Positions 21,601 through 62,612 of a DNA stretch of 64,000 nucleotides are shown one piece after another. How positions within the stretch are numbered: the first letter of the stretch is position 1; every line of letters begins with the position of its first letter. The stretch spans positions 8,643,786 through 8,707,785 of the forward strand of contig MU062841.1 of the NCBI GenBank assembly GCA_013265495.1. Reading direction: 5' to 3'. A model generated the notes under the pieces. That model was not told the DNA's origin. It worked only from the letters and a program-made list of their open reading frames with translations, and searched no databases. A program made the translations under genes and the position numbers. This stretch comes from Vicugna vicugna. Lineage: Eukaryota.

Positions 21601-24600
21601 GAGCCAGCGACAAGGGGTTGAGTACCTCTTGTGCTTTGAATCTCTCTTAACTCATGTTCTGCTGCATCTCTCTAACTCCAGCCAGAAAATTTTTTTCGTT
21701 CTTAAGGACTTGTGTGATTAGATTAGGCTCACTAAGATGGTCTCCTGATCTTGAGGTCCATAACCTTAATCACATCTGCAAAGCCCCTTTTGTCGTGCAA
21801 TGTAACATACTCATAAATTCTAGGAATTGGGATGTGGGCATCTTTAGGGGAGGCATTAGTCTGCTGAAAACGCTAGGTTTTTATGTTAACCATTTCTGTC
21901 ACTTTTCCTGGAGGACAGTGTACTTTCCCAAGCTGTGTTTTAGGCACTTTTTTTTTTTACATATTTATGAACACTTTTTCTGTTTCATGTGTTGCAACTT
22001 CTACTTGAAGAGTCCAATTATTTTCAATATTGGATTATTTAGATTCTCTCTCGTTTTATCTCTAAAAATGGCATTAAAACATCCATTTTAGGTATAATTT
22101 ACATACAATAAACTGTGTCTGTTTAAAGTGATGCATTTGAACAGATGTGTCTAGCCACAGAACCCCAATCCCACTCGTGATACAGAACGTTTCCATCACC
22201 CACAAAAGCTTTCTTTGCCGCCCAGCCCTCCCTTCACTCCTCTAGCTGCTTTAAAAGCTTTTCTTTCTCTCTCTCAATACTGCGTTCACTTCCAAGTCTT
22301 GCCTCTATGTCATTAATTTGATCTTCAGCCATGTTTCTTCTGTTTTTTTTTCCTTCTGGTTCTGAATTATTTGTTGGATTTCTAATAATGTTATATTTCA
22401 TAGTTTTTCCCCTCACCTCTGTAGTTTTCCATTTTATTCTGTTATTTTATCATCTCATGTCCAACCTCTGATATTTGTGAACTGATATTATTTTAAAGTT
22501 TTCCTATTGTGCAAAAACATAGGAAACTTGCTCTGTTTCTCTGGTTGTGTTTTGCCCAGATATGGCTCTTCAGATGCTTTCATACAGCTGTGTTCCTTTC
22601 TTTCCTTAAAAAAAAAATTACCATGGGGGAGAAACAAAAACAAAACAAGATTCAGAACTGCACAAACTTTATTATGTCTTTTGTTTAAATAATAATACAT
22701 TAAAGAAAATCATGCTAGGTTATGCATACATTTTTTTGAGTTGCCATGGCTCCCCTCCCCTCCTCCTCCAAATCACATGGTTAATTTGGACAGCTCTGAC
22801 ACTTATTTTTTAAGAAGACCTCTAAAGCGTCCTTGAAAACCATCTTGAAACATCCAGGGCACCTAGAAAAACATTGGTATAACAATCATTTGCCTGGTCG
22901 GAAACTGAGGTGAGCCTTCCCACTTACCCACTCTCCTCTCAGGATTCCGAATCACTGAGACACAGGAGTCCAATGGGAATGAAAAAAAAAATACTTCCCA
23001 TTAAAACATAATCCCCAATTTTAAGTTTTTATTACTAAGGAGAAAAGAGAAAAATATTAATGACCGTAAAATTACAGTATGCACATGGTTAGAAAATTCA
23101 AACCTTTTAAAAACTGCAAAACAAAAAGCAAAAGCCTCTCTCTTTACAAACTCCAGTTCCTGACATTTGTAATTGCTTCCTGAAAACAGAAATTATACTA
23201 ACATATATAGACATCTATGCTATAAATATGTATCATATATGTACGCTGTATGTGCATATATATGCCCTATTTGTTTAGACAGGAGGTCATCGTATATGAA
23301 CTGCCCCATACTTGTTTCGTTTAACGATCTCCAAGAGGAGACTATTCCTCATCAATTCATGTAGACCCACCTCCTTCTTTTACAGTCCTCCGGTCTACCA
23401 GCTGAGCTGTTGAAGGGCACATCCCACCTCCTTCTTTTAAATAACCTCAACTTCTTACATTGTGTGGATGCTTCATCTTAAATTTAATCAGTCTCCTTCT
23501 TTCCAGTTTTACCCCAGGAAAGCAGCAAGCAAAGCAAAGGGTAAAAACACAGATATTTCTCCAATACTCCTGGGAAGTTGAGCAAACCTTCTCATGGAGA
23601 ATGAGAATTAGAGAATAGAGTTCCCCACTGATCATTTTCAACACAAGAAACAAATTGGGGGGAAGGGAGGGGTTACTAATATTTCTTTCTTGGGCTCATT
23701 TAGAGCAGTGGTGTTTCAGTTGTGCTGACTGGGATGTGCTGTTGTGCACAACGGGAATGAAGTCTTACCGAGGGAAGGGAGGAAGGCGGGATGACGCTGA
23801 AAGACCCTCCAACTCTGTCTTTCTGAGATTTTAAACTTGAAGCCTTGGGACTGCATCTTAAGCAAACATCTCAGCGGCATTTTCTGCAGTTATTTAGTGC
23901 AACATTAGCCTACGAATAGAGCCCTGTACCCACTTAAATGATGAAGTGATGCACGTGAATTTCCCCTGTTAAGGATGGATAGTTTGCATTCACGTATCAT
24001 AGTTTGGGGAGAAGTTTTGCAGTAAATGAACCTATTGAACATGCATGAACCCAAAGTTTCCCAGACTTCCTCTAGCACTGAGCTCTTTCCAGCCTGTTAC
24101 TTGTTAATATCTCATGATGCAAGTGTTGCCTTCCGAGTATCTTAAAAATATATGTCGCTACTGAATCTCTTTTTTAAATTCAGTGCAGGAATCAGTAAAC
24201 ATTTTCTGTAAGGGGCCAGATAATAGATATTTTAGGATCTGCGGGCCAAACAGTCTCTTGCAAATACTCAGCTCTGCCATGTAGCACGAAAACCGCCGTA
24301 AACAGTGAGTGAACAAGTGACCATGGCTGCGTTCCAATAGGTCTTTAATTACGGACACTTAAGTTGAGTTTTATGTCATTTTTGCAAGACACCAAAGATC
24401 ATCCTTGTTTTCCCCCAGCCATTTAAAACTATAAAAATCATTCTTTTTTGTTTGTTTGTTTGTTTTTGGGGGTGGTGGGGGTAATTAGTAAAAATCATTC
24501 TTAGTTAGTAGGCTGTGCAGAAAGAGATGGGCTGAATTTGACCTGATAGGCCACAGGGTGATCTGCTCTGATTTAGTGGATAATAATTTAGGATAAGAAA

Positions 24601-27600
24601 TAAATGCTTTATTCAACCAGACTGTGTGACGTCTATGACATTTTCAAGCAGATTCGGAAGTTTTGTGTATTTACATATTAAAGGGAAAAGATATTAAAGC
24701 TGCATCTACTCTACAGAAAGCATTTGTTATCCTACAGTTTAGCTCCTAAATATTGAGACATTTTAATAAAACTCTACCTGTTAAGACAGGGTAAGTTTGA
24801 TAAGGATTTCTTGAATAAATGCTGGTGAACATCTCCATGTTATAAAAGAAATGAGATTAGAAATTGTCTCTCCACAAAGGTTTATTTAGTGCCAGATGTT
24901 AAAGAAAAGCTTTTCGTGATGCTTTGCAAAGGACACAGCACAGAATTTGCATCATAAAATGGGTGCAAAAGTTTAGTGTACCTCTGGTGAAAAATTTCTT
25001 TCTGCTGCTGATAAAGTCTGAACATTTGTCAGCTACAGATTTTTGAGCATCCACAAAAGTACAGCTTTCCAAATGTACTGCAGTCCCTCTGAATGCATGT
25101 CCCTTTTTCCTACATAGAATGCTTGCCACGCCTCCTTTTGGGGCCTCTCTTTAGTGACTGCCCTTGTCCTCTTCCCGTGGCTCCCTGGTTTCTTGCAGGT
25201 TCATCCCGGAGCCCTGGTCCACCTGCAGCACCACGTGTGGGCCCGGCGTCCAGGTGCGCGAGGTGAAGTGCCGCGTGCTCCTGACCTTCACACAGACGGA
25301 GACCGAGCTGCCTGAGGAGGAGTGTGAAGGCCCCAGGCTGCCCACCGAGCGGCCTTGCCTCCTGGACCCCTGTGATGAGAGCCCAGCCTCCCGCGAGCTG
25401 GACGTGCCCCTCCAGGAGGAGGACAGTGAGATGACTTACGACTGGGAGTACGCTGGGTTCACCCCCTGCACCGCGACATGTTTGGGAGGTACTTGATCTT
25501 TTGCTTAAAGGACCGTTAGGCTTGTGTTACTAATGGCTTGAGAAATCACTAAGTCAGTTAAGCCAAACGTGCAAACTAGCAGAAGTGGAAAGGAGGTTAA
25601 GTCACCTGAACAACTGAAAACTATGCTTTTTCTTTCTTTTATTTTTCATTGTGATTATTCCATAAAGATAAAGGATGGTGGCACTGTATCCGACATTCCT
25701 TTGGCCTGAGGTGGAGAGAGAGGTCCCTGGTTCATAGAGAGTGAGTAGGAAAATGCAGAAATGCCAAGTCAAGGCACTTGTGCATAAATCAGAACTGCAG
25801 CGTGAGGCCGCCTGGGGTTGCCCTGTCTGATGCGGCTCGAGGTCAGAAGGCATCCTCAGAGAATTCTTAGGTTCATCCCCGCAGATTAGGCCAGAAACCA
25901 GGGCCGAGCAAACGGATGAGCACAGTTTATGTGTGTGTGTCCGTGTGGAGCACAGGCATAGCCTGGGGACCCTGTTAAGATTAGGAGGTGGCAATCAGTC
26001 AGGTGACCCTCTGAGGGTGGAAGCTGGCCCCAGGGTGCTGTCAGCATTCCAGGATCCGAAAGGCAGTGGAGGAGCAGGGAGCAGGAGTCCCGATCGGCGT
26101 TCTCTCTCGGTTGGAAGTAAAAAGACAGAAATAATCAATGGGAAACCTAATCCTCTACCCACATGAAGGAGACTCATCTCATCAGGAATCCAGGGCCCCT
26201 GACATCCTGTCGCTGACTCCTGGCTGTGCCTTGCAGCCAGCTGTCTCGGCTGAAGCTGGGGGTTAGGCGTGCTCTGACTTTGGCCCCAGCCAATGGTGGG
26301 AAAAATAAGGAGGCCGCGGCCTTCCAGGCGATTGGCTCAGGAGCATGCTCCACCCCTCCTGGTGGCCCTGAGCCCGTTTCTCGGAGTCCCCGGTCAGGTC
26401 TTAGAGCTCATGGCCCGGTCATTGTGCCCGAGCCTCTCACCCTTTTTTCCCCGGGCTCTTGAGTACATTCTCAGTCCTTACCATCCAGTGGCCGTGACTC
26501 GATGGTATCTGTCTTTCTCCTTTTCTGTCTCACTCAGCCTGCCAACCCACCTGTCCTAGACACCAGTCCTTCCGTAAACCCAGATGGAGCGGCATGTGCT
26601 TTACCCCCAGGCTTCAGCGAAGCTACTGCCTGTCGTATGGAGGTACACACGTGGAAGTCAGGAAAAGAACCCTTATTTGCCTCCAGACTCTCTCTCCCTC
26701 TCTTACTTGCTTCTCCCTGGTTCCTAGCAGCCCACCTGAACTAGCCAGAAATGTAGTTTTCTGTCTCACTCAGATCCTAAATGTCTGCTCCGTCTCTTCC
26801 CTCCAGGGCGTGTGGTCTCAGTTGCCCCTACACTGCCTCATGTCTGTTGCTGCCCAAAGCTTAGCTCTTGCTCCCTCTGAGTTCAGGATCCTGGACACTT
26901 CTTTTGTTGTATCTTGGAAACCTTAAGGCTGATATTCCCTTGGACATCTGGGGACTGATACCTTCCTGATGAGTCTAGGAAACCCTCTAGAGATGGTCAC
27001 CGAGATGCAAAAATGTTTCCCAACTCAAATGCAATTATAGATGTCTGAAGCTTTCTGCTACATGACTGCAAAATGCATCTCTCTCCCACTTCTGAGCCAC
27101 TGTGTCGCTGCTGGAGACTTGGAGCTCTGTCCCTCGTTGTTGGAGCAGAAGTGGGTGCTGCTATTGCGTGCATACCCCACATCTACTGTATTAATCTCAG
27201 GCTTCTAACTATTGTCATTATAGAATTGCTGTTTTATCTAGTACTCCGTCGTCCTCGACCTCATTTCTTTTCCGGACTGGGAGGGCCCTCTCCAGGTGGA
27301 AAAGAATGGCATGTCGGGTCCTTGGAACTCAAGAGACCAGTTGGAGTTGCCCAAGGAGAGAGGATCAGGTGAATTCTGATTCATTTGGGAGAGTCTGTTA
27401 GACTTCTGCTTTGGAGCCTGGTGCCAACTTGTGAAGATCTGCTGTTGTGTTCCCAGTGCCCACTAAGGTGGCCCTAGGTTCCACCTCCAGGATGGCTGCA
27501 CCCACTGGAATGATCTATTTTTTTCTGCAACAGCTTTATTAAGATATAATTCACATGCCATGTGATTCACGTATTCAAAGTATACAATTTGGTGTTTTTT

Positions 27601-36600: not shown

Positions 36601-39600
36601 GGCCGTCAAGAAGCCATTGCGGTGTGCTTACACATCCAGACCCAGCAGACCGTCAATGACACCTTGTGCGATACGGTCCACCGCCCCCCAGCCATGAGCC
36701 AGGCTTGTAACACGGAGCCCTGCCCGCCCAGGTGTGTGCTGTCCCGTGCTTCCGGGACACGCTGTTTTGACAGGGTTGGTTCCTTCCGAGGGCTGCGTGG
36801 GAAAACCTGGTCTGTGCCTCTCTCCTAGCTTCTGGGAGCCCCGAGCGTTCCTTAGCTTACACGCAGCCTTCTTCCTCTCTTTTCACATCATCTCCTTTCT
36901 GTGTGTCCCTGCGTCAAAATTCCCTGTTTTTATAAGATCACCACTCATGTTGGGATTAGGGCCCACTCTAATGACCTCATCCGAACTTGATCGTCAGCAA
37001 AGACCCTGTTTCCAGATAAGGTCACATTTACAGGTACTAGCAGTGAGGACTTCTACATCTTTTTGAGAGAACCAATTCAACCTATAACAGCATATAAACT
37101 CCTTTGTAACCCTGGTTTTAGATTCTTGAACCATATTTGTCATGACCACCCTCACCTCACCCCCTGTACACACACACACCACACTCAAGTGCCGCCCCAG
37201 CAGACTTGCTCAGCAGCCACACTGCATTATCCGTTATGACCCATGCTCATGCTCACTCATGGCTTCTGGGCCTTTGCATGTACTGTGCCCTCTGCATGGA
37301 GCCCTTCTCTGCCGTGAAATGAGCTAATCTCTCCCATAAATATCATCAGTGGCTCCCTTCTCGCTGGCATGATGAAGTCCAACAATGTGAAACAGGATCC
37401 TAGCCTGAGACCTTTGCTGGGGGTGTGGGGGACTCTGAATAGTCCAAAGAGAAGTGGGGATGGTCAGGGACATGAGGCAGAGCCCTAGTTCGGCCTCCGT
37501 CAAGGAGCGTCAGACATGTCCCTTGGCTCTCTGGCCTAGCTTCTTAGTGTGAATAATGGTGAAAGGTGTTCGAGTTTATGGTCCCCAAGGTCCCCTTCAG
37601 CTCTGGTCTTTCATCTTGAGCAGTGCTTTCTGGTTGCGTTTTCCACTCACGTCTCCAGAACTCTGCCCGGTCTTTTTGCAGCTAGAATCATTTGAAATGC
37701 TCCGGGGCTTGTTTTAGTTCTAAGAACAGCAGCCTCTGCGTGCCCTGCCTGGGAGGCCAGGGCGGGGATGAGTTTGCTCACCAAGTCAGGGCAAGATGGA
37801 ACAATGAGTCTAGAAACTGTTTCTTCAGGTTGCTGAAGGCAGCATGCTGGTTTATTCACGCGCAGGACCCCTTCCCCTCATCCCTCAGCCTCTGCGGGAG
37901 TTCTTGCATGTTATCTTCTTCAGCAGTGTCTTGCCCATGGAGCTTTCAAGCTAGGAATAACACAGCACACAATGTGTCCTGGCCACTTTGCAAAATTAAG
38001 GGTCTGTTTTTATGTGAAGAGNNNNNNNNNNNNNNNNNNNNNNNNNNNNNNNNNNNNNNNNNNNNNNNNNNNNNNNNNNNNNNNNNNNNNNNNNNNNNNN
38101 NNNNNNNNNNNNNNNNNNNNNNNNNNNNNNNNNNNNNNNNNNNNNNNNNNNNNNNNNNNNNNNNNNNNNNNNNNNNNNNNNNNNNNNNNNNNNNNNNNNN
38201 NATTTTCCATACAAATATTTACGGACTCCAAGGGCAATAGCAGTAAAATATCACCCCAGGGCGAAACTTACCAGTGAGACTGGGTTGGACAGTCAGTAGA
38301 TCTCTGTTTACCCAAAGGCAAGTGTGTTTGATGTATTAGCCTGACTCTCCGAGGTGGGGCGTTGTATGTTTATTTGCTCTTACGGGGTTACTCTCCTTGG
38401 TCTCTCCTATAACTGCTGAGTGTCTGCTGCTTATGGAGTTTGTTTTTTCCAGGAGAGAGCCAGCAGTTCGTAGAAACATGCAGGGTTACATCACGGTCCC
38501 ACTAGTCCCGAGAAGAGCCTTCTATGACAGGTTTCAACACAGCTAGATAGGGAAGTAGGAAAAGTAAGAGGCAAGAGTAATGTGTTTCTGTACCAACTTG
38601 TTACCCAGTTCTTGAATTTAAAATACACTCTGTGTGTAGTTTATTGTCTCTTAGTAAGAAATTGTTACCCATTTCTTGAATAAAAATGGTTCCAATCCAG
38701 TCCCTTATGCCACTAATCGATTCTTCCAGTTATATACTTTCTTGAAAGATTGAGCATCCCAGAATCACTCCAAATTAGTTACATAGTTAAGCTGAATTGT
38801 TTTAATAGTGCAAGAAAAGCCGTCTAATGATTTAACTATGTAATCTGATTGTCATCAAAGTATGACCTATGTATCTACTCTTGGTGAGTTCCCTCACTTC
38901 TGAAGCTACTGGAAATTTAGATGTGAGTAGGCTAATTTAATAGGTCAACTAGTTAATATGCTTCCAATTAAGATGGTGTTTTAATTTCACGTTCTGCTCC
39001 AAATACAGATCAGTGATAGCTGTAGTATTAAAAAGAGAGACGACATAGGGAAAAACAGCTACGTAGGCTAGGAAAGGAGAAGTGGTGGGTGGTGAGTGGA
39101 ACTGGACCTATGGTTCCTCTGGGCTTCAGCACCAAAGCAGTTAGGGTAAATCAGAGTTCAGATACTATGGATGGCAAGGACTGAGCATCTCCCTTTTAAT
39201 TCATGGGAAAGAGCCCATGTTTTTTGCTTCTTTGAGAAAGAAAGCAAAAAACGAACAGAAAAACTGCTGCTGATTACAACCTGAAGCGGCTGTTTGCATG
39301 AGGCTGCTCACCTGTGGGGATGGAGGACGGACACAAATGAGCCCTATGACCAGACACGGCCCAAATTACCTGGACCCTTTACTACCAGCAAAGTTTCCCT
39401 AAAGATAATTTTAAAGGAATGTATTCATGAAGCAAACTGATCCTAGAAGGATGGTCTGAGATACAAGAATGAATAAAGAGCAAAGTGCATTGTAAAGACA
39501 GTTACTCCAAAAAAGAATCATCGATTGTGCAAATCAATAGTAAGATTGACTTTATGGATTTAAAATCGATGTTGAACAGCAAAGCCTGGTGAAACTGGGT

Positions 39601-45600: not shown

Positions 45601-47218
45601 CATATTACAGAGCACAGCTCAAGATACATCCAAGAACATGGATTTCCAAATATGACTTTTCAGTTTTCAATAGATTTATTAATTGTGACTCATAAAGGCA
45701 GTTATGTGTTCGTAACTGGCTTTGGAGAACCAATTGTAATCTCTTCTTACCTTATATTCAGTGACATTAGGATGACAGCTTGAAGTCAGCCATGATGGGA
45801 GTATTTACACCACAGAAACTGGCAAATGTTACAGTCAGAGCCCTTGTCTTCAAGGACCTGTTGTGAAACATTTACTAGCACACAACTTCAATGAAAGGGT
45901 TATTCACACACACACACACACACACACAATCTTATCAATAAGACAGTTTCAGCTTATTGATAAGACAGGTACTTAGGATGGAAATGCCCTTACTTATTAA
46001 CTGAAATAAAGAGACTTGTATAAGCTTCTTCTAAATTGAATATGCCTATTGCCACAGCCCTGCACCCTCCCATTCATTCACTGAGCTCTGAGATGATTGA
46101 TTATCCCAGAGACCAGGAATCTGAGACAACCAAGAATACAGCCTTCAATGAACTCACAGCTTAATGAGGCAGACAGATACAAAATTGAGTAAAAAGCCCA
46201 ATAAAGGCGTCCCATCTCCAGAACTATGTGAAAATCAACAGGAAACATCTAAGTCGGTCTGAGTCCCCGGAAAGTATTGTGGAAGATGTGGCTTTAGAGT
46301 TGGGTCTTAAAGGATGAATGCCAACTGTGTGGAAATGAGACAGCAGGGTGTTCTAGGCAGTGACAGGAGTGTAGTGACAGATTGTGAGTGAATCAGTCTT
46401 ATGTGGCTTGAGAGTAGGAAGCATTAAAGATGAGGAAGAAGGTGAGAGGTGAAGGGGAAGTTGCAGCTAGATTGTGAAGGACCTTGGGTATTTGGATTTA
46501 TCCGTAGTCATTGAGGGCACAGTGGAAGTTGTTTGAATAGGGAAGTAAAAGGCAGGGTTTTTTTTTTTTTTTTGATGGAGGTACTAGGGATTGAACCCAG
46601 GCCCTTGAGCATGCTAAGCAAGAAAATCATGCAGAACAGTGAAGATAACTACACTGAAACACTCCCACCCCCCTACCCTCTTCTAACAGTACAGGGAAAA
46701 AATCTATTTCGTTTAAATAGGAGCATCAGCAAACCCCACAGAAGGATACTGTAAGATAAAAGTATCAATAACATAACAACATAATGAAAATTCTGCCTCA
46801 AGGCAGATGAATTGAATATAACTTACGATTCAAAATGAGTTAAAAGAAATCAAGAAATGTATAGAAATAAATCAGAAGTAGAAAAGCTCAGAAATGATAT
46901 TAATAAGGCAGGGGGATGTGAAAAAATAGCTGACAGGGTTTAGGAAAGAATTAGAAAACTAAGGGGGAAAAAATTCAGAAATGCAGACTAAACTAGAAGG
47001 AACACAAGAATGACCAGACGCAGGAAGCGTAAGTGTAAGAGAAACCAGAGAAAGAAGGGAGTTAAAAATAATCAATGAGAAATACAAAATAGTCAAGCAA
47101 AAGTGATAGATGTAAAACAAAGAAAGGCAGGTCAACAAAGATCGAAAAAATAATCAATGAGAAATACAAAATAGTCAAGCAAAAGTGATAGATGTAAAAC
47201 AAAGAAAGGCAGTCCAAC

Positions 47219-47261
<43 letters not shown>

Positions 47262-50200
47262 GAATCCTAAGAGAAGAAAACCAAAACAATGTAATAGAAC
47301 AAAACTATAACTTAAAGACTCAAATCACCATCTTGAAAGAACACACACCATACCTGGGAAAATCGACCCAGAATGGCCAATACCAAGACATAATTGTACT
47401 AAAACTACTGGATTTTAAAGATAAGGCATAATGTATTAGTGTATCTAGGCAGAAGGACCAGGTCACGTATTAGGGGAAGAAAATCAGGTAAGCATCAGGT
47501 TTCTCAGCAATACCACTTCCTACTAGAAAACAGTGCAGCAACATATTTAATATAATAAAGAAAAAGAAAGAAAGAACATGTGAACCGAGGATTTTATATC
47601 CTGCCCAACTGACCTTCGAGTTTGAAAGTCACAAACAAATCGCTACAAAGATGCAAGAACGCGGGGTCTGTTGTTCCCATGAGCTCTTGCAGGGGAATCT
47701 GCCGTATTTCTATGGAACAAATCACAGAAGCTTTGGCACAAGGTGCTGCTTTGGGAATTATAGTTGATGGCACTGATCTGGTCACTTCCTCTCGCTCTGA
47801 GCTGTGAACGTTCTCCAAAGGCATTCTAACGACGAACTCAGCGGATGCAGGTCACGTAAGACCTCCATCCAGAAAAGGAGTTTACAAATGATCCTCCCTT
47901 TCATAATAGGGAGAAAAAGCCAAATATTGATCATTAAAAATGGCTTGTGAGTGGTGACTGACAATCATTTAACCACTACTTTTACATTGTGTGGTAACCT
48001 CAGATAATGATTCGACTTGTTAAAAAATCATAATTTGCTGAGTGATAATTTTTAATTATTTGTTCAAAAGCTTACAAAAAACTTTCCTCCATACTAAAAA
48101 AATGTATTAATAATTGGGGCTTTCTGTTAAAGATGACAGTAAAGGCATTTAAGAAAATTCCATTCCCCTCCTTTGAAATCCAACAAAAAACCCACAAAGA
48201 GAATGAAAGAGAGGGAACAGTCTGTCTTCAATGAACAGTGAAATGGCCACAATCACAAACGACAAATTACGAAACACACCTGCCAAAGATCGTAAAATCT
48301 GGACCAAAATAAGAGAGGGAAGGCTGAGGGCTGACAAATATTTCCTCAGGCGCCGAACGGGATGTAGATTTCCCTAGGAGTAAGTGTGACCGTCCTGACA
48401 GGCCTACTCAACAGTTTTTTGAGTACAGAGACTAGATGGAGGACCATGAGCTGCCCCTGAAAGCAGCGTGAACGTCCCTGCAGGACGGCTGGGGAGATGG
48501 AGAAGCCTCAAGGAAGGCTGCCAGCGATGAAGTGGTGTGAAGGGAGAGGGGCAGCAGCCACTGGACGGTTACCCAGCGAGCCAGGTATTTACGAGGCTTT
48601 TTCCCAGCCACACCGACCACTCAAATACCAAAATCTGAAGAGAGATGTGGGCAAGGGAAATAAAAGTCTGGTGACAGAGTGATGAAGACAACAGACTGAT
48701 ATAAACACCCCAGTTCATTCCCCGACACATGTTCTTCACAAACAGCCAGCTGCATTTAAAGCTCCAGCATAAAACTATGCATCGGGGGTGTGTGTGTGTG
48801 TGTGTGTGTGTGGAGGTGGGGAGGGTATAGCTCAGTGGTAGACAGTATGCTTAGCATACACGAGGTCCTGGGTTCAGTCCCCAGTACCTCCATTAAAATA
48901 AATGAATCTAATTACCCCCCTCAACAAACAAACAAACTATGCATTAAAACTGGGGAGAAAAATTGAAGGGGAAGAAAGAAGTCAGGATGTGGGGAAAGGA
49001 ACAGAAAGTGAGTCACATGAACAACACAGCATCACAAAAATGTTCCTCATGGAAAAGAACCAACAAATAGGCTCTGTACTCCTAAGGAAATTAGAGCCGT
49101 GATGTCTGGGGAAAAGCGGGCTTTAAAATGGAATTTGAAACATAAGTCAACAGAAGGAGATGAAAAGAACCTCAGAACAGTCAGGGAAGAAAATTTGAAA
49201 AGAAAAATTTTAAGAAGCAGACGTAAAAGTTACTTTACAAGCAATAACAACAAAAATAATTTAGATGATTGAGAACAGAGAGTTGCAGTATACAAGCTGG
49301 AATAGCTCATATAAAATGGTAGGGAAAAGAGTCAAGGTGTAAAGTTGGTGTCAGAGGCAGTGATGGATCTGGAAGACGGCGGAAGGAGATCAAACGTAAG
49401 TGTCATCGGTATTTGCGAGAACAAAATGAATGGAACAGAAAAGCATTCCGAGATAATTGAGGGGAATTCACTTCCTTTAATAAAAGCTTTAATCTGCAAC
49501 TCATAATGGTAAACCACGTGCCAAGAACTATGACCCACTGAGACGCAGCCTGCTTGAGCTGCTGAACTTTGTGAGTCAAGAAAGAGCCCTGGGCCTCTGA
49601 GCATGAAAGGCAAAGCAAATAAACAAGAAAAATTCCCCGCTGGGCTTCCTGCAGCCTCACAGTAGCATCAGATGCAAGAAGTCAGTGGAGCAGTGTCTGC
49701 ACAGTTCACAAGGAAAGGACGTATGGCCCGAGCGTTTTCACCTCGGTGGTTCTTCATGTAGAAAGGCAACAGAGGGGCAGTCAGAGAATGAATACGTTCG
49801 CATAAGCCCCTCTTGAAAACGTTGCAGGGCCAAGATGAGACAGCAAGATGATTCTAAATAAAGAATACAGGAAGGTACTGATGCTGGTAAAAAAAAAAAA
49901 ATGGAAGATGAATAATAAATTCACTTAAGTTCAGAAATAAGACTCAGCAACCAGCAAGTTGCATTTCAGAAGAGTGTAAATATCAGAAATCTTGCCATTA
50001 GCTAAATGATTGAACAAAAACAAATGGGGTGCTTGGAGAGGAGAGGTGGGTGGGGAGAAATGTAAATGTGCTTGTTTTCTCCTCTTTCTTAGCAGCAAGT
50101 CAATAGATACTCTCATAAGTCAAAATATGTCTGTAAAAATAATTACCCGAATCTTTTGTTGGTTTCTTTCATCTTGCTTATTAACTTCAGAAAGTTCTTT

Positions 50201-53200
50201 TGGAAATCAATTACCTAATAGTGAGAAAAAAGATCAACCTTTCAGCAACTCTTTTAATTTTACTTTAGTCTTTTATCCTAATATACGTCATCAAATTGCA
50301 TTAAAATTTTACTTTAAAGTTGCACATGTACATGTGATTATGACTATCAAATATCAATGGTATACCCACAATTATTATCAAATATTAGTGTTATTTTATG
50401 TATAGCAGTTTGGGTGGTTTTTTAAAAAAACTTTCCTTTTATACTTTGCTGCTTCTTGAAATTCTGATCATGGGTATGCATTACTTTTTAATTTTAATTT
50501 TTAACTGAACTGCATATGACATATATTCGTTTCAGGTGTAGAACATGGTGACTTAGTGTCTTTATACATTACGAAAGGATCACCACAGTAAGTCTAGTTA
50601 CCATTGGTCACCATACAAAGTTAATACTACATTTTGTTGATATTATGTTGTTTTTAAAAAAGCAAAGTCATCTTGTTGTATAAATAAATAGCTAAAGAAT
50701 AAACGTTAATCACAAGGCCAAAAAAATCCCATGAGAATAAATTACTAGAAATTANNNNNNNNNNNNNNNNNNNNNNNNNNNNNNNNNNNNNNNNNNNNNN
50801 NNNNNNNNNNNNNNNNNNNNNNNNNNNNNNNNNNNNNNNNNNNNNNNNNNNNNNNNNNNNNNNNNNNNNNNNNNNNNNNNNNNNNNNNNGGAGGAGTGGG
50901 GAGAAGAGAGGGAAACCTTCCATAACCTAAAAGATGTTCAGGCCTAGGAAATGCTTACGGGCACACCCATACACAAAACACCTCCTTGTTTCGCCATGGG
51001 AGGCCTCACTGTTGCTGGGAGCATGTGTCTGCTCTCGCCCCGTTTGACTGTTGCACAATTCTCATTGCAGTGTTCTGTCAGCTGTGGTGTTGGAACCCAG
51101 CGAAGAAAGCAGGTGTGTCAAAGGCTGACAGCCAAAGGCCGGCGCGTCCCCCTCAGTGAGGCGGTGTGCAGGCATCTCTCTGGGCCGCCTCTCGTGAGAT
51201 CTTGCCAGATGCCTGTGTGCAGGAGTAAGTATGGAAAGTCTGTGTGCCACCGGATCTGCTGATTCTGTTCATCTCTCCCAATGGCTTCATCTTCCCTAGA
51301 GCGACATATTTCTAATCTGTAGGTAAAGCAAATCATGCAGAACTCAGGACTGTTACAAGTGGCAACCAATATAACTTTGAAGACCAAGATATAGCTCTAA
51401 GAAAAATCAGTTTTAAGACACATCCACCTGCTTAACAAATGCATCTTTTAGGTTTCCTCACTTGAATTTATATTTCTTATATCCTCCCCTCCACTCTGAT
51501 TTCTTCTACTTAGAATTCATGAGTGTTCCTTGTAGAAGTGAAGCTGAAATACTTTTCTGGCTGACTTTGTGAATGATATACTGTGATTCATTCTATTAAA
51601 GGTAGATGAGCTAATTATTTTTAAGTACAAATATCTCTTCGTTTGTGTAATCTAAAACTAGCACGGATGAAAACATGAAGTAGCTTTGTTGTTGTTTTTT
51701 TTTTAAATGGCAGTTTAGAGACTTCTTCCATTTATTCTAAATAATAAGCTTTGTATAAAGAGTTAATATTATAGCTTCATTATATCCAAAAGCTAATATG
51801 CAGGTAGTGTTTGTCTCTATCTTCGGCGTGCATGAGATCCTGAATGCACATGTGCATGGCCGTGTTTCATGTAGAAAGCTGACAAAAAATGAGTTGAGGC
51901 CTTCCCCTGCAGCAGTTGAAAATAAAGCAGCAGAGCGATGGTGGGAGGTGGGGGAGGGGGTGAGGAACAGGCACCCTGGGAACACATGGCTTCTGGGTCC
52001 GTCTACTGCTTTTGTTTCTCACTGTCTTTAATTATCCACCTGAAAAAAGAATACCAATTACCTAAGTAACTACCTCCTGAGCTTACGGTAAGAAAAAAAA
52101 TCAAAAGTAACTATTATTTTAATGCTTCTTAGGAAGAAAAATATATATAAATACGTATACATATATATATTCTCCTAAGTTTACCAACAACTTTCCTGGA
52201 GAAACTCACAAAGGAAAGTAAGAAAAACAATCATAGCTTGTTAAAAAAAAGTAATAGCATTTATAGCATTTATTGACCACTTATTCCGTGGAGTTCCTTG
52301 CAGGCATTATTGCATTATCTTATTTAGTTCCCAGCAATGTTGTGAGACAGGTATTATCCTCATTTAGAGAAGAACAATCCAAGACTTTGAGAAGGTATGA
52401 GACTTGACCAAGGATCCGTAGCTGCCAGTTGGACCTCTCGGCCTGTTTGACCACAAGTCTGTCTGAGTCCTGAGCCCACGCTCTTAGTCACCTCTCTATG
52501 GTGATTCATGGATAACATTCACTTTTTTTTCCCTGGGAATTCTTTGAGAACAAATTTTCAAAATCTTGAGATTCCAAAAATTTGAGATCCCAAGTTGTAT
52601 GGTGTCCTGGAATCCGAGAATGTCCGTGGCATGTGGCGCAGTGTCATGCTTTAAGCTGTTTATCTATCTGATTTCTATTAATTGTGGATGGTTGCAGAGC
52701 CATGTGGCTACACCGTAAATTGCCTTAGAGGAGAGTGAAATTAAATTTTGGCAGCTCTCTCTAAAGTAATAACGGAATAACATGTGGGAATACATCGTGG
52801 TTATTAGGGCATGTGATGTGGTACAAGATGAAATTATAAATTATTATAGCATGCAGTAGAAAGTAGAAATGATAAGTTTTAGGGAGAAAAAAACAGGAAA
52901 TAAGGCAGTAATATTTCTTCTTGACCCCACCCTACTCCCTAGCTTGCCAACACGTGGGTCATGGAAGCAAACAAGAGTCAAGAATGCATGCTCCCAGCCC
53001 AGCCAAGTCACCCTGAGCTGTAGCCTGGCCTCACGCCATCACTTTGGATCAGTGACCCTTGTTTGCAGAAATTTGGCTTCTCCCTCTGCACTCTCCTATG
53101 GCATCCTCTTCTCCCACCACCGTATCGGAGTCTACGGATGAGCCCAGCCCTCATCCATCCTCCTTTCCCCTGCTGTCTCCGCACCCATTTCCCTCTGTCA

Positions 53201-59200: not shown

Positions 59201-61437
59201 TGCCCATGGACCTAAGTACATTTTCAAAGAGGAATCAGCCTTCTGCCCACATTACGCCCCTTACTTACAGCAGAACCATGTCAGGACACCTTGAGACCTT
59301 CCCGCAGGTGAACCGAGGGAGAGGAATACTCCTCCTGGGGGATGGGATCTGAGGAGTATCCATTCATCCATTCACTGGAGCCAGTGCCCTGGAACAAGTA
59401 TGAGTCAGCCCGTCTCTGACCCCCTCAGATGGCCCTGTGGCCTGCTGGCTGGACCTGCCTTTGTCAGCCGACAGCAGTTGTATGTGAGATCTTAGGTGTG
59501 CCTGCTGCTGTGCTGTGCACTTGATGTAAATGCTCCAGCCTAACTGTCACGTTCCCCTGGTGAAGGTGCTAACATTACCCCCACTTTATAAGTGAGAAAA
59601 CTGAGGCTCAGAGAGAGTAAATGACTTGTCCAAGTGGCAGTGGGAAGATTCAAACTCAGACTCATCTGGCTTCGAAATACCTATTCTGCCTTTTCTTCTT
59701 TCTTGAGCTCCTGTTTCTTCAGGCCCCCATGCTAGTTTAACTGACCTGCTGCAGTTGGCCAACCTCATCCTCCTTTTCAGATCCTTCACATGCTTTCACT
59801 CACCTGCCCACTCTCACTTTCTCCTTCAGATTGGTGTACCCATGGCCAAGCCATACCAGGCTCTCAGGGGCCTCCCTGCCCGATGGTGGTGGCCCAACAC
59901 ACTGGACATCGTGTTGATGGAAACACTTAACCATGTAACCTCATGCCTCCCCCAACCAGGCTTTATAAAATAATGTGCATGTTTTCAGGCAATTCATTCC
60001 AACCTGCATTCTCTGCTGCCAAAATACTAGGTAGTTGTGAAATTTACCCCAATCTATGGATGTATATCACTATTTTTGTTTTAGTTCTCAAATATTTTAA
60101 AAGGGGGAAAACAATTTTTAAAAATAAGATAAATAAAAATACGAAAAGGAATATATATATATGTATATATGTATGACTGCATCACTATGTTGTACACCAG
60201 AAACTAACACAACATTGTAAATCAATAAAAAATAAACAAGTAAATAAAAAGGAAAAAAGAAGATCCATTTGTTGACTTGTGTCAGCCTTGGAAGATGACT
60301 GTCAAAAAGTTTTCATTACTGAGATGTTGCTCTGTGTTTTCTTTTCTTTCTTGTTTCCCCCACAGAAACGAAACCAGAGGTGAGGACAAGGCTTGGCGAT
60401 CAGGGTCCTCAGATCCTCGGGGTCCAGAGAGTCTACATTCAGACGAGGGAGGAGAAACGCATTAACCTGACCGTCGGTAGCAGAGCCTATTTGCTGCCCA
60501 ACACGTCGGTGATTATTAAGTGCCCGGTGCGACGCTTCCAGAAGTCGCTGATCCAGTGGGAGAAAGACGGCCATTGTCTGCAGAACTCCAAACGACTCGG
60601 CATCACCAAGTCGGGCTCCCTGAAAATCCACAGCCTCGCGGCCCCCGACATCGGCACGTACCGCTGCGTCGCGGGCTCTGCCCACGAGACGGTGGTCCTC
60701 AAGCTCATTGGCACTGACAACCGGCTCATCGCGCCGCCGGCCCTCAGAGAGCACGTGAGGGGGTATCCTGGGAGGGACCCCAACGAAGCCAATAATTTGG
60801 GAGCCACGTGGCATAAAATGAGGCAAATGTGGAGTAACAAAAATGAGCTTTACCTGGACGACGACCACATTCATAACCAGCCTCTCTTGAGAGCTCTGCT
60901 GGGCCCCTGCGGCCCTTCTGCGGGGAACACCGACTCCTGGGAGCTTAAGAATAAGCAGTTTGAAGCAGCGGTTAAACAGGGAGCCTACAGCATGGATACC
61001 GCCCAGTTCGATGAGCTGATAAGAAACATGAGTCAGCTCATGGAAACCGGAGAGGTCAGCGATGACCTGGCGTCCCAGGTGATATATCAGCTGGTGGCCG
61101 AGTTAGCTAAGGCGCAGCCGGCACACGTGCAGTGGGGGCGCCTCCCCGAAGCGGTGCCTCCCGCGGCTCAGCTGAGGGGGGGATCAGGAAGCGTCCCCCA
61201 AAGCGTGAAGGTGAAAAAGTCAGGCAAGCTGATGTTCAAGCCAAAGGGACCTGTTCTTCTGAGACCAAGCCAGCCCACCTTGATTTCCTTTAATAAAACA
61301 ATAAATGCAAGGATTGGAAACACAGTCTACGTTACAAAAAGGACGGAGGTCATCAATATACTGTGTGAGCTTGTTACCCCCAGTGAGGCCACATATACGT
61401 GGACCAAGGATGGGGCACTGCTCCAACCCTCAGAAAA
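501..61437 (+). CDS. ADAMTSL3: ADAMTS-like protein 3 (punctin-2), partial multi-exon CDS: join(501..612,5629..5767,6887..6937,7620..7824,12036..12183,14246..14330,25199..25488,36602..36731,41011..41203,41315..41494,51071..51224,60366..61437)
   Basis: Twelve AG/GT-bounded exons. Phases chain without a break (0-1-2-2-0-1-2-1-2-0-0-1-2). The joined translation matches ADAMTSL3 as recalled (e.g. GYQLNSAECVDIRLKRVVPDHYC, WEHNPWTACSVSCGGG, KRINLTVGSRAYLLPNTSVIIKCP). No start or stop codon in the window. Confidence 0.97.
2103..2285 (+). mobile_element. MER5A-like hAT-Charlie non-autonomous DNA transposon
   Basis: Resembles the MER5A consensus as recalled: ggaccagcagc...cctgggaacttgtgaga...ccccaggcctactggatcagaactctgggggtgggg...cccactg. 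Confidence 0.75.
2575..2975 (+). mobile_element. 5'-truncated L1 3' end (artiodactyl/camelid type)
   Basis: Contains atatgatatcactta...gtagcacagggaactatattcaatatcttgtaataacctataatgaaaaagaatat...cactatgctgtacac and ends in an A tail. Clearly similar to the copies at 13601 and 31603. Confidence 0.85.
2977..3197 (+). mobile_element. MIR SINE
   Basis: MIR core tctctgagcctcgttcttctcatctataaaatag and 3' gcctggcacttag. Confidence 0.7.
5346..5523 (+). mobile_element. MER5-family hAT-Charlie element
   Basis: Termini attctcaatcttggc...cccaggtgattctg...ggagaaccacag. Confidence 0.55.
5629..5767 (+). CDS. ADAMTSL3: ADAMTSL3 exon B (139 nt), TSP1 repeat
   Basis: tgctttag|GT acceptor and AG|gtttgc donor. 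Encodes GYQLNSAECVDIRLKRVVPDHYCHYYPENVKPKPKLKECSMDPCPS. Confidence 0.96.
6887..6937 (+). CDS. ADAMTSL3: ADAMTSL3 exon C (51 nt), inter-TSR linker
   Basis: ttcatttgtag|T acceptor and CG|gtgagt donor. Encodes SDGFKEIMPYDHFQPLPR. Phase 2-2. Confidence 0.93.
7620..7824 (+). CDS. ADAMTSL3: ADAMTSL3 exon D (205 nt), TSP1 repeat
   Basis: gcttttgag|C acceptor (GAG) and CAG|gtaaga donor. Encodes WEHNPWTACSVSCGGG...CPKWIAMEWSQ. Confidence 0.95.
11105..11290 (+). mobile_element. Old L1 (L1MB/MC-like) 3' end
   Basis: ggactttagttaataataatgtaccagtattggttcatc...tgtactgtctgctcaatttttctac...ctaaaaaataaa. Confidence 0.7.
12036..12183 (+). CDS. ADAMTSL3: ADAMTSL3 exon E (148 nt), TSP1 repeat
   Basis: tctttgaag|TGC acceptor and AAG|gtaact donor. 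Encodes CTVTCGRGLRYRVVLCINHRGQHVGGCNPQLKLHIKEECVVPIPCYKPK. Confidence 0.96.
13601..14070 (+). mobile_element. 5'-truncated L1 with a candidate TSD
   Basis: Extreme ORF2 C-terminus (IKKNKIMPFSATWMDLEIIILSE in ORF 13552-13743) followed by the 3' UTR and an A-rich tail. Flanked by aaaaatatatgaca (~13587-13600) and aaaaatatgaca (14071-14082). Confidence 0.88.
14246..14330 (+). CDS. ADAMTSL3: ADAMTSL3 exon F (85 nt), linker
   Basis: ttttttcttag|AA acceptor and AC|gtgagt donor. Encodes EKGPVEAKLPWLKQAQELEETRIATEEPT. Absent from the ORF track. Confidence 0.95.
17085..17357 (-). mobile_element. Old L1 3' UTR fragment (L1MB/MC-like)
   Basis: gaaaatttcaaacatgtataaag...gcaaacccagacagcatatcatctcattcataaatatttcagtat. 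Confidence 0.6.
17358..17816. mobile_element. MER5-like element (17358-17480 and 17756-17816) split by an antisense L1MB-like 3' fragment (~17506-17751)
   Basis: MER5-like 5' part (aaagtgtggtcc...agaatcacctg) and 3' part (ccccaggtgacttc...gggaaccact) flank aaattgtggtgaaatat...ccatctccagaattttttcatcatccca. Confidence 0.65.
18826..18972 (-). mobile_element. MIR SINE
   Basis: ttaattctcacaatgacccc...attattactctcattttag...ggcacagaaagattaagg. Confidence 0.65.
21259..21870. mobile_element. MLT1-family MaLR solo LTR
   Basis: caccacaaacttagtggtttaagacaa...ccttaatcacatctgcaaagcccc...gggcatctttaggggaggcatt. Confidence 0.75.
23381..23416 (-). pseudogene. Tailless retrocopy of tRNA-Tyr(GUA) 5' half (nt 1-36)
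   Basis: The minus strand reads CCTTCAACAGCTCAGCTGGTAGACCGGAGGACTGTA, 33/36 identical to the vertebrate tRNA-Tyr 5' exon as recalled. Flanked by a perfect 17-nt direct repeat (23366-23382 and 23423-23439). No poly(A) tail. Confidence 0.85.
24186..24570. mobile_element. MER58-like hAT-Charlie element
   Basis: gtaaacattttctgtaaggggccagataatagatattttagg...tactcagctctgccatgtagc...ggctgcgttccaata. Confidence 0.7.
24446..24488 (-). mobile_element. Tail-only remnant of a Vic-1 SINE, with TSD
   Basis: Reverse complement ctaattacccccaccacccccaaaaacaaacaaacaaacaaaa matches the 3' end of the full copy at ~48908-48936. 14-nt TSD TAAAAATCATTCTT at 24432-24445 and 24489-24502. Confidence 0.75.
25199..25488 (+). 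CDS. ADAMTSL3: ADAMTSL3 exon G (290 nt), TSP1 repeat plus start of the next
   Basis: tttcttgcag|G acceptor and GAG|gtactt donor. Encodes FIPEPWSTCSTTCGPG...YDWEYAGFTPCTATCLGG. Confidence 0.96.
27518..28070 (-). mobile_element. L1MB-like 3' fragment
   Basis: cagctttattaagatataattcacat...ttcatccatgttgtagcat...tttcatttctcttgggtatatacttaggagtag. Confidence 0.8.
30110..32050 (-). mobile_element. L2 LINE remnant, interrupted by a younger L1
   Basis: Purine-rich antisense L2 signatures, e.g. gagaagccattcaagtcacttaaatggg...gacatgataaaat and gagttcagttgtggacat...gagatctagactggaaat. Boundaries approximate. Confidence 0.65.
31603..31827 (+). mobile_element. 5'-truncated L1 3' end with 14-nt TSD
   Basis: Same family as 2575 and 13601. 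TSD aaaaggcaatgaga (31589-31602) and aaaaggcgatgaga (31828-31841). Confidence 0.85.
32780..33520 (-). mobile_element. Degenerate old L1 ORF2 fragment
   Basis: ttttgtcatcagggttatactagttttgtaagatgaattgg resembles antisense L1 ORF2, and T-rich L1-like sequence follows. Boundaries approximate. Confidence 0.5.
34535..34870 (-). mobile_element. L1 ORF2 internal fragment
   Basis: ORF 34527-34754 ([35 protein letters not shown]) resembles the L1 ORF2 motif [26 protein letters not shown]. Confidence 0.85.
34900..35075 (-). mobile_element. L1 ORF2 extreme C-terminal fragment
   Basis: gctgcaaatggcaaaatatcc...atccattcatctattgat...cttccatatcttggcaatt...gtatctttttgaatta. Confidence 0.8.
36602..36731 (+). 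CDS. ADAMTSL3: ADAMTSL3 exon H (130 nt), TSP1 repeat
   Basis: ccaacctctag|GC acceptor and AG|gtgtgt donor. Encodes GRQEAIAVCLHIQTQQTVNDTLCDTVHRPPAMSQACNTEPCPPR. Confidence 0.96.
36770..37090. mobile_element. MLT1-family LTR fragment
   Basis: cagggttggttccttccgagggctg...ttgggattagggcccactctaatgacctcatc...gtcacatttacaggtact...caattcaacctataaca. Confidence 0.75.
38022..38201. other. Assembly gap (180 N)
   Basis: Run of N. Exons H and I join in frame across it, so no constitutive exon is needed here. Confidence 0.99.
41011..41203 (+). CDS. ADAMTSL3: ADAMTSL3 exon I (193 nt), TSP1 repeat
   Basis: ttcggtacag|G acceptor and CAG|gtatgg donor. Encodes WHMGSWGPCSATCGVG...CPPSWHIEEWQQ. Confidence 0.96.
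41315..41494 (+). CDS. ADAMTSL3: ADAMTSL3 exon J (180 nt), TSP1 repeat
   Basis: ctgtctccccag|TGC acceptor after a 111-nt intron, and AAG|gtaagg donor. Encodes CSRTCGGGTQNRRVTC...CPPHLTVGDWSK. Confidence 0.96.
45705..45882. mobile_element. Probable hAT (Tip100-like) non-autonomous element
   Basis: gccatgatgggagtatttacaccacagaaactggcaaat and terminal ttgtgaaacatttactagcacac. Family assignment uncertain. Confidence 0.45.
45905..45928. repeat. (CA)n microsatellite
   Basis: Uninterrupted CA run. Confidence 0.9.
46556..46620 (-). mobile_element. 5'-truncated Vic-1 SINE
   Basis: T tail followed by ggaggtactagggattgaacccaggcccttgagcatgctaagca (B-box region in reverse complement). Confidence 0.8.
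47064..47220. repeat. Tandem duplication, 82-nt period
   Basis: 47064-47130 and 47146-47212 are identical over 67 nt. Confidence 0.95.
47222..47254. repeat. (TA)n microsatellite
   Basis: Uninterrupted TA run. Confidence 0.9.
48783..48933 (+). mobile_element. Full-length Vic-1 tRNA-derived SINE with a 5' (GT)n extension
   Basis: ggggagggtatagctcagtggtag (A box)...gtcctgggttcagtccccagtacctcc (B box)...ctaattaccccc and a caaa tail. TSD aaactatgcat at 48772-48782 and 48934-48944. Confidence 0.88.
48950..49850 (+). mobile_element. Degenerate L1/HAL1 ORF1-like remnant
   Basis: A-rich sequence with gatggatctggaagacggcggaaggagatcaaacgtaagtgtcatcggt (DLEDRSRRNNIRIIG-like). Confidence 0.55.
50755..50889. 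other. Assembly gap (135 N)
   Basis: Run of N about 180 nt upstream of exon K. Confidence 0.99.
51071..51224 (+). CDS. ADAMTSL3: ADAMTSL3 exon K (154 nt), TSP1 repeat
   Basis: ctcattgcag|TGT acceptor and GGA|gtaagt donor. Encodes CSVSCGVGTQRRKQVC...RSCQMPVCR. Confidence 0.95.
52255..52460 (-). mobile_element. MIR SINE
   Basis: atagcatttattgaccactta...gtattatcctcatttag...gacttgaccaagg. Confidence 0.65.
54519..54760 (+). mobile_element. MIR SINE
   Basis: tgtggttaag...gagttcaaatctc...gtgacattgggcagg...ctcaatttttcatctataagatggg...gtgccaggcacata. Confidence 0.75.
55545..56850 (-). mobile_element. L2 LINE remnants
   Basis: tttactatgtaccaggccctatgct (L2 3' end), taaggagtttagattttatcca and gtgaacagttaggtctggagctc. 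Boundaries approximate. Confidence 0.55.
58131..58166. repeat. Compound (GATGATGCT)3(GAT)3 repeat
   Basis: gatgatgctgatgatgctgatgatgctgatgatgat. Confidence 0.9.
59570..59700 (-). mobile_element. MIR SINE
   Basis: attaccccactttataagtgagaaaactgaggctcagagagagtaaatgacttgtccaag...gattcaaactcag. Confidence 0.75.
60140..60265 (+). mobile_element. Short L1 3' terminal fragment
   Basis: atcactatgttgtacaccagaaactaacacaacattgtaaatcaataaaaaataaa; same family as 31603. Confidence 0.75.
60366..61437 (+). CDS. ADAMTSL3: ADAMTSL3 exon L (1072 nt): Ig-like domain 1, long spacer, start of Ig-like domain 2
   Basis: tttccccacag|AA acceptor and AA|gtaagt donor. Ig motifs IKCP...WEKDG...YRCVAG and ILCE...WTKDG. 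Coincides with the 353-aa ORF. Confidence 0.97.
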
Positions 61438-62612
61438 GTAAGTAAAGAATCCAGTGTTCACTCTGTCCTCAGTCACACCTTCTTAATGATTATTCCAGTT
61501 TTCTTGAAAATATTTTCAAATTCCTTCTCCTTTCCAACAGGACTTTTTAGGAAAGAACCTCAAAAATGTTAGGGTATGTTTTTCACATATGCATTGGAAT
61601 TCTAAAAATGATCATACTGTCCCAATCACTATCATGCAGATGTAATGCAAGATGCTATGAGACTGAGTTTAGACATATATAGACTCGCTCTTTGCAGGGC
61701 ACTTAACCTTTGCAAATAAAATCAGTATAAGGTCGTTAAAAAAGTAAGCATACGTGTAGTAATCCTACATTATGTAGGAACTGCAAATCAGCATTTACAG
61801 TGCCCTTCCACGTCTGGGAGATGCGGTATCTCATTTGAACTCAAACCAGACCCGTGAGTTTGGCAAGGCAGCGGTTAACACGTTTTTGATGAGATCGTTG
61901 AGAAACAGAATCTCATGACTAATTCATGGCCAGTCAGAACCAGGGACCATATCTCCTGAACACTGCCAGCAGTGTTTGAAGATCACAACAAAAGCAATTT
62001 TTTGGTAGAAAGATTGAGTATCTGAGGTAATTTTCTATATCATGTAGTTTTTTATGTCATGAAATCCAAAAATAAAATGATAAGGACCAAATTTTTTTGA
62101 GATGTTCGAAACACAGTGTTAAGTCACACATGATTTTATTGTGATCTCCATCTGTGACGGTGCAAAAAATGCTACGTTTCATCCATTTTACATAAAACAG
62201 GGGATAACAGAAATACTAATTCATTTTTGTGCCTTTACTTGTTTGTACACATAGGACTATGGACGTTTGGCTTTCTTTCAATTTGCATTTAAGAGCTCAA
62301 GGTGTACCTTATCTGCCTCTAGGGATTGTTAAAAGACACTAACAAAACATCAGATGTTAAACTGTTATGCAAACCATAAAGTGCTTTTAAAATGCAAGTT
62401 TTATTTTTAGTATGTCTTTTGTGCATCACTTAATATGTCAAACATGAAAAGAAATCTAGGTAAATTCAATTTTTAGTAATAAATTATTAGGTTATGTCTT
62501 AGAATGATAAGACAGAACAAATTTAATTAAAAATTTTTTTTTGCCTGGAACTCTGAACTCAAGAGTGTAATGAAGTTATAAAAGTGGAAAAAACTTTCCG
62601 TATCAACTAGCT

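Follow-up and report, generated by a model that had tools for sequence, protein, structure and literature searches.

A 64,000-nt stretch of Vicugna vicugna DNA (contig MU062841.1, positions 8,643,786 to 8,707,785 of the forward strand; this whole stretch is called the window below) carries a 40-nt insert at 23383–23422 that derives from the 5′ part of tRNA-Tyr(GUA). The insert is a dead, tailless, 3′-truncated retropseudogene of tRNA-Tyr, flanked by a perfect 17-nt direct repeat, and we judge it highly probable that it was made from a tRNA-Tyr precursor by the retrotransposition machinery of LINE-1 (L1). It is a real but ordinary case of a class already catalogued in mammals.

The repeat, CCCACCTCCTTCTTTTA, occurs exactly twice in the 64-kb window, at 23366–23382 and 23423–23439, with 17/17 letters identical, and the interval between its copies is the 40 nt of the insert. 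At the composition of the window, chance alone would produce about 0.001 perfect direct repeats of 17 nt within 200 nt per 64 kb. The order on the plus strand is TGTAGA, CCCACCTCCTTCTTTTA, the 40 nt, CCCACCTCCTTCTTTTA and AATAACC; the minus strand reads TAAAAGAAGGAGGTGGG, ATGTGC, CCTTCAACAGCTCAGCTGGTAGACCGGAGGACTG and TAAAAGAAGGAGGTGGG. There is no A-run or oligo(A) between insert and repeat, GGACTG being followed directly by the repeat, TAAAAGAAGG. The parts of the locus are as follows.

23366–23382, either strand: target-site duplication (TSD), the copy at the 3′ (anticodon) end of the retrocopy, from the perfect 17/17 repeat
23383–23416, minus strand: tRNA-Tyr(GUA) positions 1–34, comprising the 5′ strand of the acceptor stem, the D arm, the 5′ strand of the anticodon stem and the loop as far as G34, from identity to human tRF-Tyr-GUA
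23417–23422, minus strand: the hexamer ATGTGC, additional to the tRNA and immediately 5′ of its position 1, from the sequence
23423–23439, either strand: TSD, the copy at the 5′ end of the retrocopy, from the perfect 17/17 repeat
23440–23445, either strand: flank AATAAC, which with the repeat gives the pre-insertion site, from comparison of the sequence with the consensus TT/WAAAAWW

The 3′ junction can be drawn in more than one place. Insert-specific letters stop at G34, and U35 and A36 of the tRNA coincide with the two letters with which the repeat opens, such that the TA at 23381–23382 may equally be repeat letters or the complement of U35-A36. Because this TA is common to anticodon and repeat, the junction is ambiguous by 2 nt: RNA and target may meet anywhere in positions 34–36, and an end at the anticodon is one of three readings. 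Position 37 is an A, contributed by the target, where the tRNA has G. On the plus strand, 23366–23382 ends in CTTCTTTTA-3′, which would be the end of the DNA primer if the insertion arose by target-primed reverse transcription (TPRT). The pre-insertion site on the plus strand was CTTCTTTT(A)/AATAAC, or ATT/TAAAAGA in the sense of the tRNA. The retrocopy retains the A-box and is without the B-box and the 3′ half.

A preliminary description of this locus had reported the perfect 17-nt repeat around 40 nt, a minus strand of ATGTGC plus the tRNA-Tyr start and then (TA), the absence of poly(A) from the edges of the insert, and an L1-type target, and each of these is borne out. Its placement of the end exactly at GUA holds as far as the anticodon loop and fails in its exactness, given the 2-nt ambiguity over 34–36.

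For the identity of the insert our reference was the 37-nt human tRF-Tyr-GUA (the 5′ exon) printed in bioRxiv 10.1101/416727, and fly tRNA-Tyr genes were taken as printed in PMC4536317. The 5′ exon ends in GTAG in both sources. When the insert is read together with the two shared repeat letters TA, 33 of 36 positions match human tRF-Tyr-GUA, ungapped from tRNA position 1; by chance, a match this good would be expected about 5e-12 times in the window. The three mismatches are G>A at position 6 (a CpG transition), T>C at position 8 and G>C at position 24. In tRNAs U8 and the C11–G24 pair are structurally essential. At all three positions the fly tRNA-Tyr genes (PMC4536317) agree with the human sequence (10.1101/416727). 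The mismatches are therefore most simply read as decay after insertion, or as inheritance from a defective source copy.

A functional tRNA-Tyr gene can be rejected, as the sequence stops at the anticodon and forms no cloverleaf with a B box and 3′ half. ARAGORN called no full tRNA at the locus, and Rfam found none even at E<=10, as expected because only half a tRNA is present. A duplication at the DNA level from a neighboring gene was also rejected, there being no tRNA-Tyr gene and no further copy of the insert in the 64-kb window. The preliminary description had named a better fit to a SINE (short interspersed element) head as grounds for giving up the tRNA-Tyr assignment. That better fit was not found: the head of the local tRNA-derived SINE, of which copies lie at 48821 and 62821, matches at only 24/36 positions (copy at 48821), with gaps, vs 33/36 ungapped for tRNA-Tyr. 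Its likeness to the insert is confined to the generic A-box, and the SINE body and tail are absent at the insert.

Tailless retropseudogenes of tRNAs are, as the preliminary description had stated, a known class, described by Schmitz, Churakov, Zischler & Brosius 2004 (Genome Res 14:1911; here via Noll et al. 2015, PMC5322556, and Ohshima 2013). Noll et al. give the consensus TT/WAAAAWW for tailless insertions, targets complementary to the last 2–18 nt of the copied RNA, and truncations in loops. The class takes in unprocessed tRNAs, and the screen of Noll et al. allowed 20 nt upstream for precursor sequence.

The window locus resembles this class at every one of these points. It originates from a small RNA with a near-complete 5′ end, its match running from tRNA +1 and being preceded by 6 nt, which the class allows as leader. 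Its 3′ truncation lies in a loop, the tRNA match ending at 34–36 inside the anticodon loop. There is no oligo(A) between element and TSD, and the TSD is within the range of 8–30 nt (17/17 perfect). ATT/TAAAAGA compares well with TT/WAAAAWW: TT, W=T and AAAA fit, and the trailing WW is represented by G then A, only one of them a W. Finally, TA (U35-A36) is complementary to the target. It differs in that the camelid locus is new, camelids not being among the species named in the available parts of Noll et al. (PMC5322556), and in that its 2-nt complementarity is at the lower limit, the minimum, of the reported 2–18 nt. Table S2 of that paper lists 18 human Tyr-derived tailless copies (16 TyrGTA, 2 TyrATA) of 37–57 nt, with a median near 44–45, and also many copies of anticodon-loop length from other tRNAs; in the supplements the Tyr copies are given as coordinates and not as sequences. 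At 40–42 nt including the extension, the window element falls inside the range of the human Tyr copies. Compared with a classical L1-mobilized SINE or processed pseudogene, it has the same TPRT anatomy, a TSD and a TT/AAAA-like target, but it is without an A-tail and is truncated 3′ rather than 5′.

In 18 of 20 runs from three closely related organisms, here A, B and C, nearly all sampled words of the locus are present. In one run per organism, single contigs of A, B and C hold the filled site, with the whole 501-nt stretch including the insert at 0–1 differences. Since the filled site is in contigs of all three, the insert predates the split of these close relatives. As for its age, the substitution counts fit values between a few million and tens of millions of years and are too small to narrow this further.

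Two other contigs, of 512 and 7336 nt, align only to 23379/23380–23417, with 4 differences each. A, B and C all have the 512-nt contig, at the depth of a single-copy sequence and with unaligned ends on both sides. In tRNA sense it reads TTCACAGT TAATATTGAAAGCTGGG GTTCC[C + tRNA part]TAA TATTGAAAGCTGGG ATACC, with 30 letters of each flank visible. It is a second, independent retrocopy of the 5′ part of tRNA-Tyr, elsewhere in the genome and with a repeat of its own, TATTGAAAGCTGGG, of which 14 letters are read directly; the length is 17 if TAA precedes both copies. This second copy carries 6 extra 5′ letters, GTTCCC. Its end point is apparently the same as in the window, with TA common to anticodon and repeat, provided that its TAA agrees with that of the window. 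For the 7336-nt contig, a tRNA-Tyr gene and a third retrocopy are both conceivable; the 3′ exon expected of a gene was not seen in the 30 letters after the match. An apparent upstream likeness of the 7336-nt contig to the 512-nt contig was dropped as an artefact, the consensus mixing two records (agreement 0.7).

These observations suggest the following course of events. The L1 endonuclease would have nicked the plus strand of the window at CTTCTTTT(A)/AATAAC and released a T-rich 3′ end. This end may then have annealed to a tRNA-Tyr transcript that kept about 6 nt of 5′ leader, at U35-A36 of the anticodon loop, by 2 nt of certain complementarity and a possible G-T wobble at position 37. From there the L1 reverse transcriptase would have copied the RNA back to its 5′ end, and a second, staggered nick 17 nt away would have given rise to the 17-nt TSD. 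The predicted product is 40–42 nt of RNA-derived DNA without an A-tail or a function, antisense to, and probably in an intron of, an ADAMTSL1-like gene.

Several points weigh against this account. The polarity of the insertion is read from its anatomy alone. The 3 substitutions in 36 nt of tRNA match vs 0 in 17 repeat pairs are mildly uneven, which may reflect either a source that was already a variant or a pseudogene, or the noise of small numbers. And the certain complementarity at the priming site is just 2 nt, the class minimum.

Which RNA served as template is less clear than its tRNA-Tyr origin. We lean slightly toward internal priming on a longer, leader-bearing transcript. The locus sequence alone does not discriminate: it is compatible with a whole pre-tRNA primed at U35-A36 and with a fragment that ended there, and both views have been published. 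For 5S and U2 RNA, Noll et al. 2015 (PMC5322556) report that they found neither oligoadenylated truncated forms nor matching small RNAs, and they conclude on internal priming "by default". The TA microhomology is present at both Tyr copies in this genome, the window locus and the 512-nt contig (the latter if its TAA is as in the window), and such letters in common with the target are what internal priming predicts.

It is also possible, if on balance less probable, that the template was a discrete piece of pre-tRNA-Tyr that consisted of 5′ leader and 5′ exon and had been cut within or adjacent to the anticodon, either as a TSEN/CLP1 by-product or through stress cleavage. L1 would then have copied it from its very 3′ end, and the locus would be its germline fossil. 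Fragments of this sort exist. Leader-containing 5′ fragments of pre-tRNA-Tyr (Hanada et al. 2013 as cited in 10.1101/416727; PMC11092647) consist, as the window element would, of a few leader nt and the 5′ exon. They come from nearly every human Tyr locus (10.1101/416727), and their commonest 3′ ends in mouse cells are -TAGA, -TGTA and -GTAG (PMC11092647), of which -TGTA is exactly the end at the window locus. These fragments are cellular RNAs with no known link to retroposition. Two independent genomic copies each have a 6-nt 5′ extension and an apparently equal end point, which also favors a pre-cut template. A 2025 preprint (bioRxiv 10.1101/2025.02.02.635956) describes tRNA-half/LINE-1 chimeras in which tRNA positions of about 1–37 are joined to L1, with TSDs of 9–19 bp and an endonuclease motif; it proposes tRNA halves as templates and favors truncation before reverse transcription. 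The resemblance to the window locus in tRNA part, TSD and motif is clear, but in the chimeras the tRNA part is joined to an L1 segment, which is usually antisense (twin priming), and no L1 is attached here.

Other evidence counts against a pre-cut template. The canonical 5′ exon ends in G37. An exon cut by TSEN should have left that G; the copy is without it, and position 37 is the A of the TSD, so that a canonical splicing intermediate was not copied whole. The TA shared with the target belongs to the predictions of internal priming, and the negative results on truncated 5S and U2 RNAs in Noll et al. (PMC5322556) point the same way. Further, if the human Tyr coordinates in Table S2 of that paper cover the tRNA match alone, most of the copies (39–57 nt) run past position 37, unlike copies of a 5′ exon template. 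From the preliminary description's statement that L1 copied a 5′ tRNA half, then, an L1-type tailless copy of the 5′ part of tRNA-Tyr(GUA) stands, and a pre-existing half as its template is not shown. The idea, also put forward there, of a fossil of a splicing intermediate is not supported beyond plausibility, since the predicted G37 is missing and position 37 is A.

The same explanation can be extended to Tyr-derived tailless copies in general. Both copies found here, and perhaps the human ones, might be retrocopies of a discrete nuclear RNA of leader plus 5′ exon that ends at or next to the anticodon. We regard this as doubtful. If it were true, Tyr-derived loci would be a germline record of the abundance of leader plus 5′ exon fragments. 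They would further argue for an ability of L1 to start reverse transcription at the 3′ end of an RNA that was cut beforehand and has no tail, and the question of breakpoint vs internal priming, settled by default in Noll et al., would be reopened.

Internal priming, as favored above, involves a leader-bearing transcript, and the six letters ATGTGC bear on this. They are plausibly, if unprovenly, a pre-tRNA 5′ leader, which we consider probably a better reading than filler. The leader reading is plausible because the class takes in unprocessed tRNAs and because the second copy has a 6-nt extension as well. The extension in the window opens with a purine at -6, as RNA polymerase III transcripts often do. 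Leader-bearing 5′ Tyr fragments are moreover documented (10.1101/416727; PMC11092647).

Were ATGTGC instead filler at the 5′ junction, through untemplated addition or template jumping, the template would have been a 5′-processed tRNA-Tyr. Short extra sequences do occur at L1 5′ junctions, and this general knowledge is what filler has in its favor. We nevertheless think filler unlikely: the second, independent copy too has exactly 6 extra letters, also ending in C, and the purine at -6 speaks against filler as well. The inclusion of unprocessed tRNAs in the class, for which the screen of Noll et al. (PMC5322556) left its 20 nt of precursor sequence, argues in the same direction.

ATGTGC followed by the canonical Tyr start was also looked for in metagenomes. 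The single match, at 150–290 of metagenome contig Ga0137388_10297309 (L001), comes from a non-mammalian eukaryote whose tRNA-Tyr genes contain introns and form a tandem array there, separated by a spacer of 6 nt only that reads ATGTGC. We take this as a coincidence, uninformative on the camelid source. ARAGORN in bacterial mode calls none of the tRNA-Tyr genes of this array.

An origin without L1, whether by capture during repair of a staggered double-strand break, from a SINE head or as the remnant of a duplicated tRNA-Tyr gene, would suit a very short insert with no tail tying it to L1, but it is very improbable. Both the TTTT(A)/AA motif at the nick site and the duplication of 17 nt are L1 hallmarks; the match begins at tRNA +1, and tRNA-Tyr fits the insert far better than the local SINE head does; and the 64-kb window holds no tRNA-Tyr gene or other copy.

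Taken singly, the L1-made tRNA-Tyr copy is of little consequence: another neutral by-product of L1, probably intronic, with modest value as a data point. More may be gained from Tyr-derived copies as a group. tRNA-Tyr is the one tRNA with a documented abundant fragment of leader plus 5′ exon, and because of that fragment its tailless copies could test internal priming against the copying of fragments cut beforehand. That a census of Tyr copies would be informative is hinted at by the two independent ones described here, each with 6 extra 5′ nt and, apparently, one common end point.

The surroundings of the retrocopy were also mapped. An open reading frame at 60380–61441 on the plus strand (353 aa) has Ig_3/I-set matches (E 3e-11) and a match to an ADAMTSL1 domain just under threshold (26.2 vs 27 bits). 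These domains make a coding exon of an ADAMTSL1-like gene the probable identity of the frame, in which case most of the window would be an intron of that gene. The tRNA-Tyr retrocopy would thus probably lie in this intron, antisense to the gene. Nothing in the retrocopy suggests a function.

Other repeat-flanked intervals occur nearby. At 24432–24502, 43 nt lie between the copies of a 14-nt perfect repeat, TAAAAATCATTCTT, which are spaced 57 nt apart, as are those of the tRNA-Tyr repeat. On the minus strand the insert reads CTAATTACCCCCACCACCCCC and then AAAAACAAACAAACAAACAAAA, in which the local tRNA-derived SINE is recognizable by its 3′ end and A-rich tail (cf. 48900–48935). Here, 1 kb from the tailless copy, L1 mediated a classical SINE insertion, tailed and severely 5′-truncated. 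At 26521–26773, a perfect 17-nt direct repeat, TTTTCTGTCTCACTCAG, surrounds 219 nt with no A-tail. No Rfam family matched this interval even at E<=5; it could be another tailless RNA insertion or a duplication of a different type.

The local SINE family itself is represented at 48821–48935 (plus strand) and about 62690–62825 (minus strand), where ARAGORN called 'tRNA-Leu(tag)' and 'tRNA-Ala(agc)'. We rejected these as tRNA genes; they are copies of one tRNA-derived SINE family, and just one of them is barely at the Rfam tRNA threshold (29.2 vs 29 bits). The family has the head GGGTATAGCTCAGTGGTAGA and the tail CTAATTACCCCC followed by AAACAAAC. The window also contains runs of N at 38022–38201 (180 nt) and 50755–50889 (135 nt), and at 47064–47255 an 82-nt unit in 1.9 tandem copies (97% identical) that passes directly into (TA)17.

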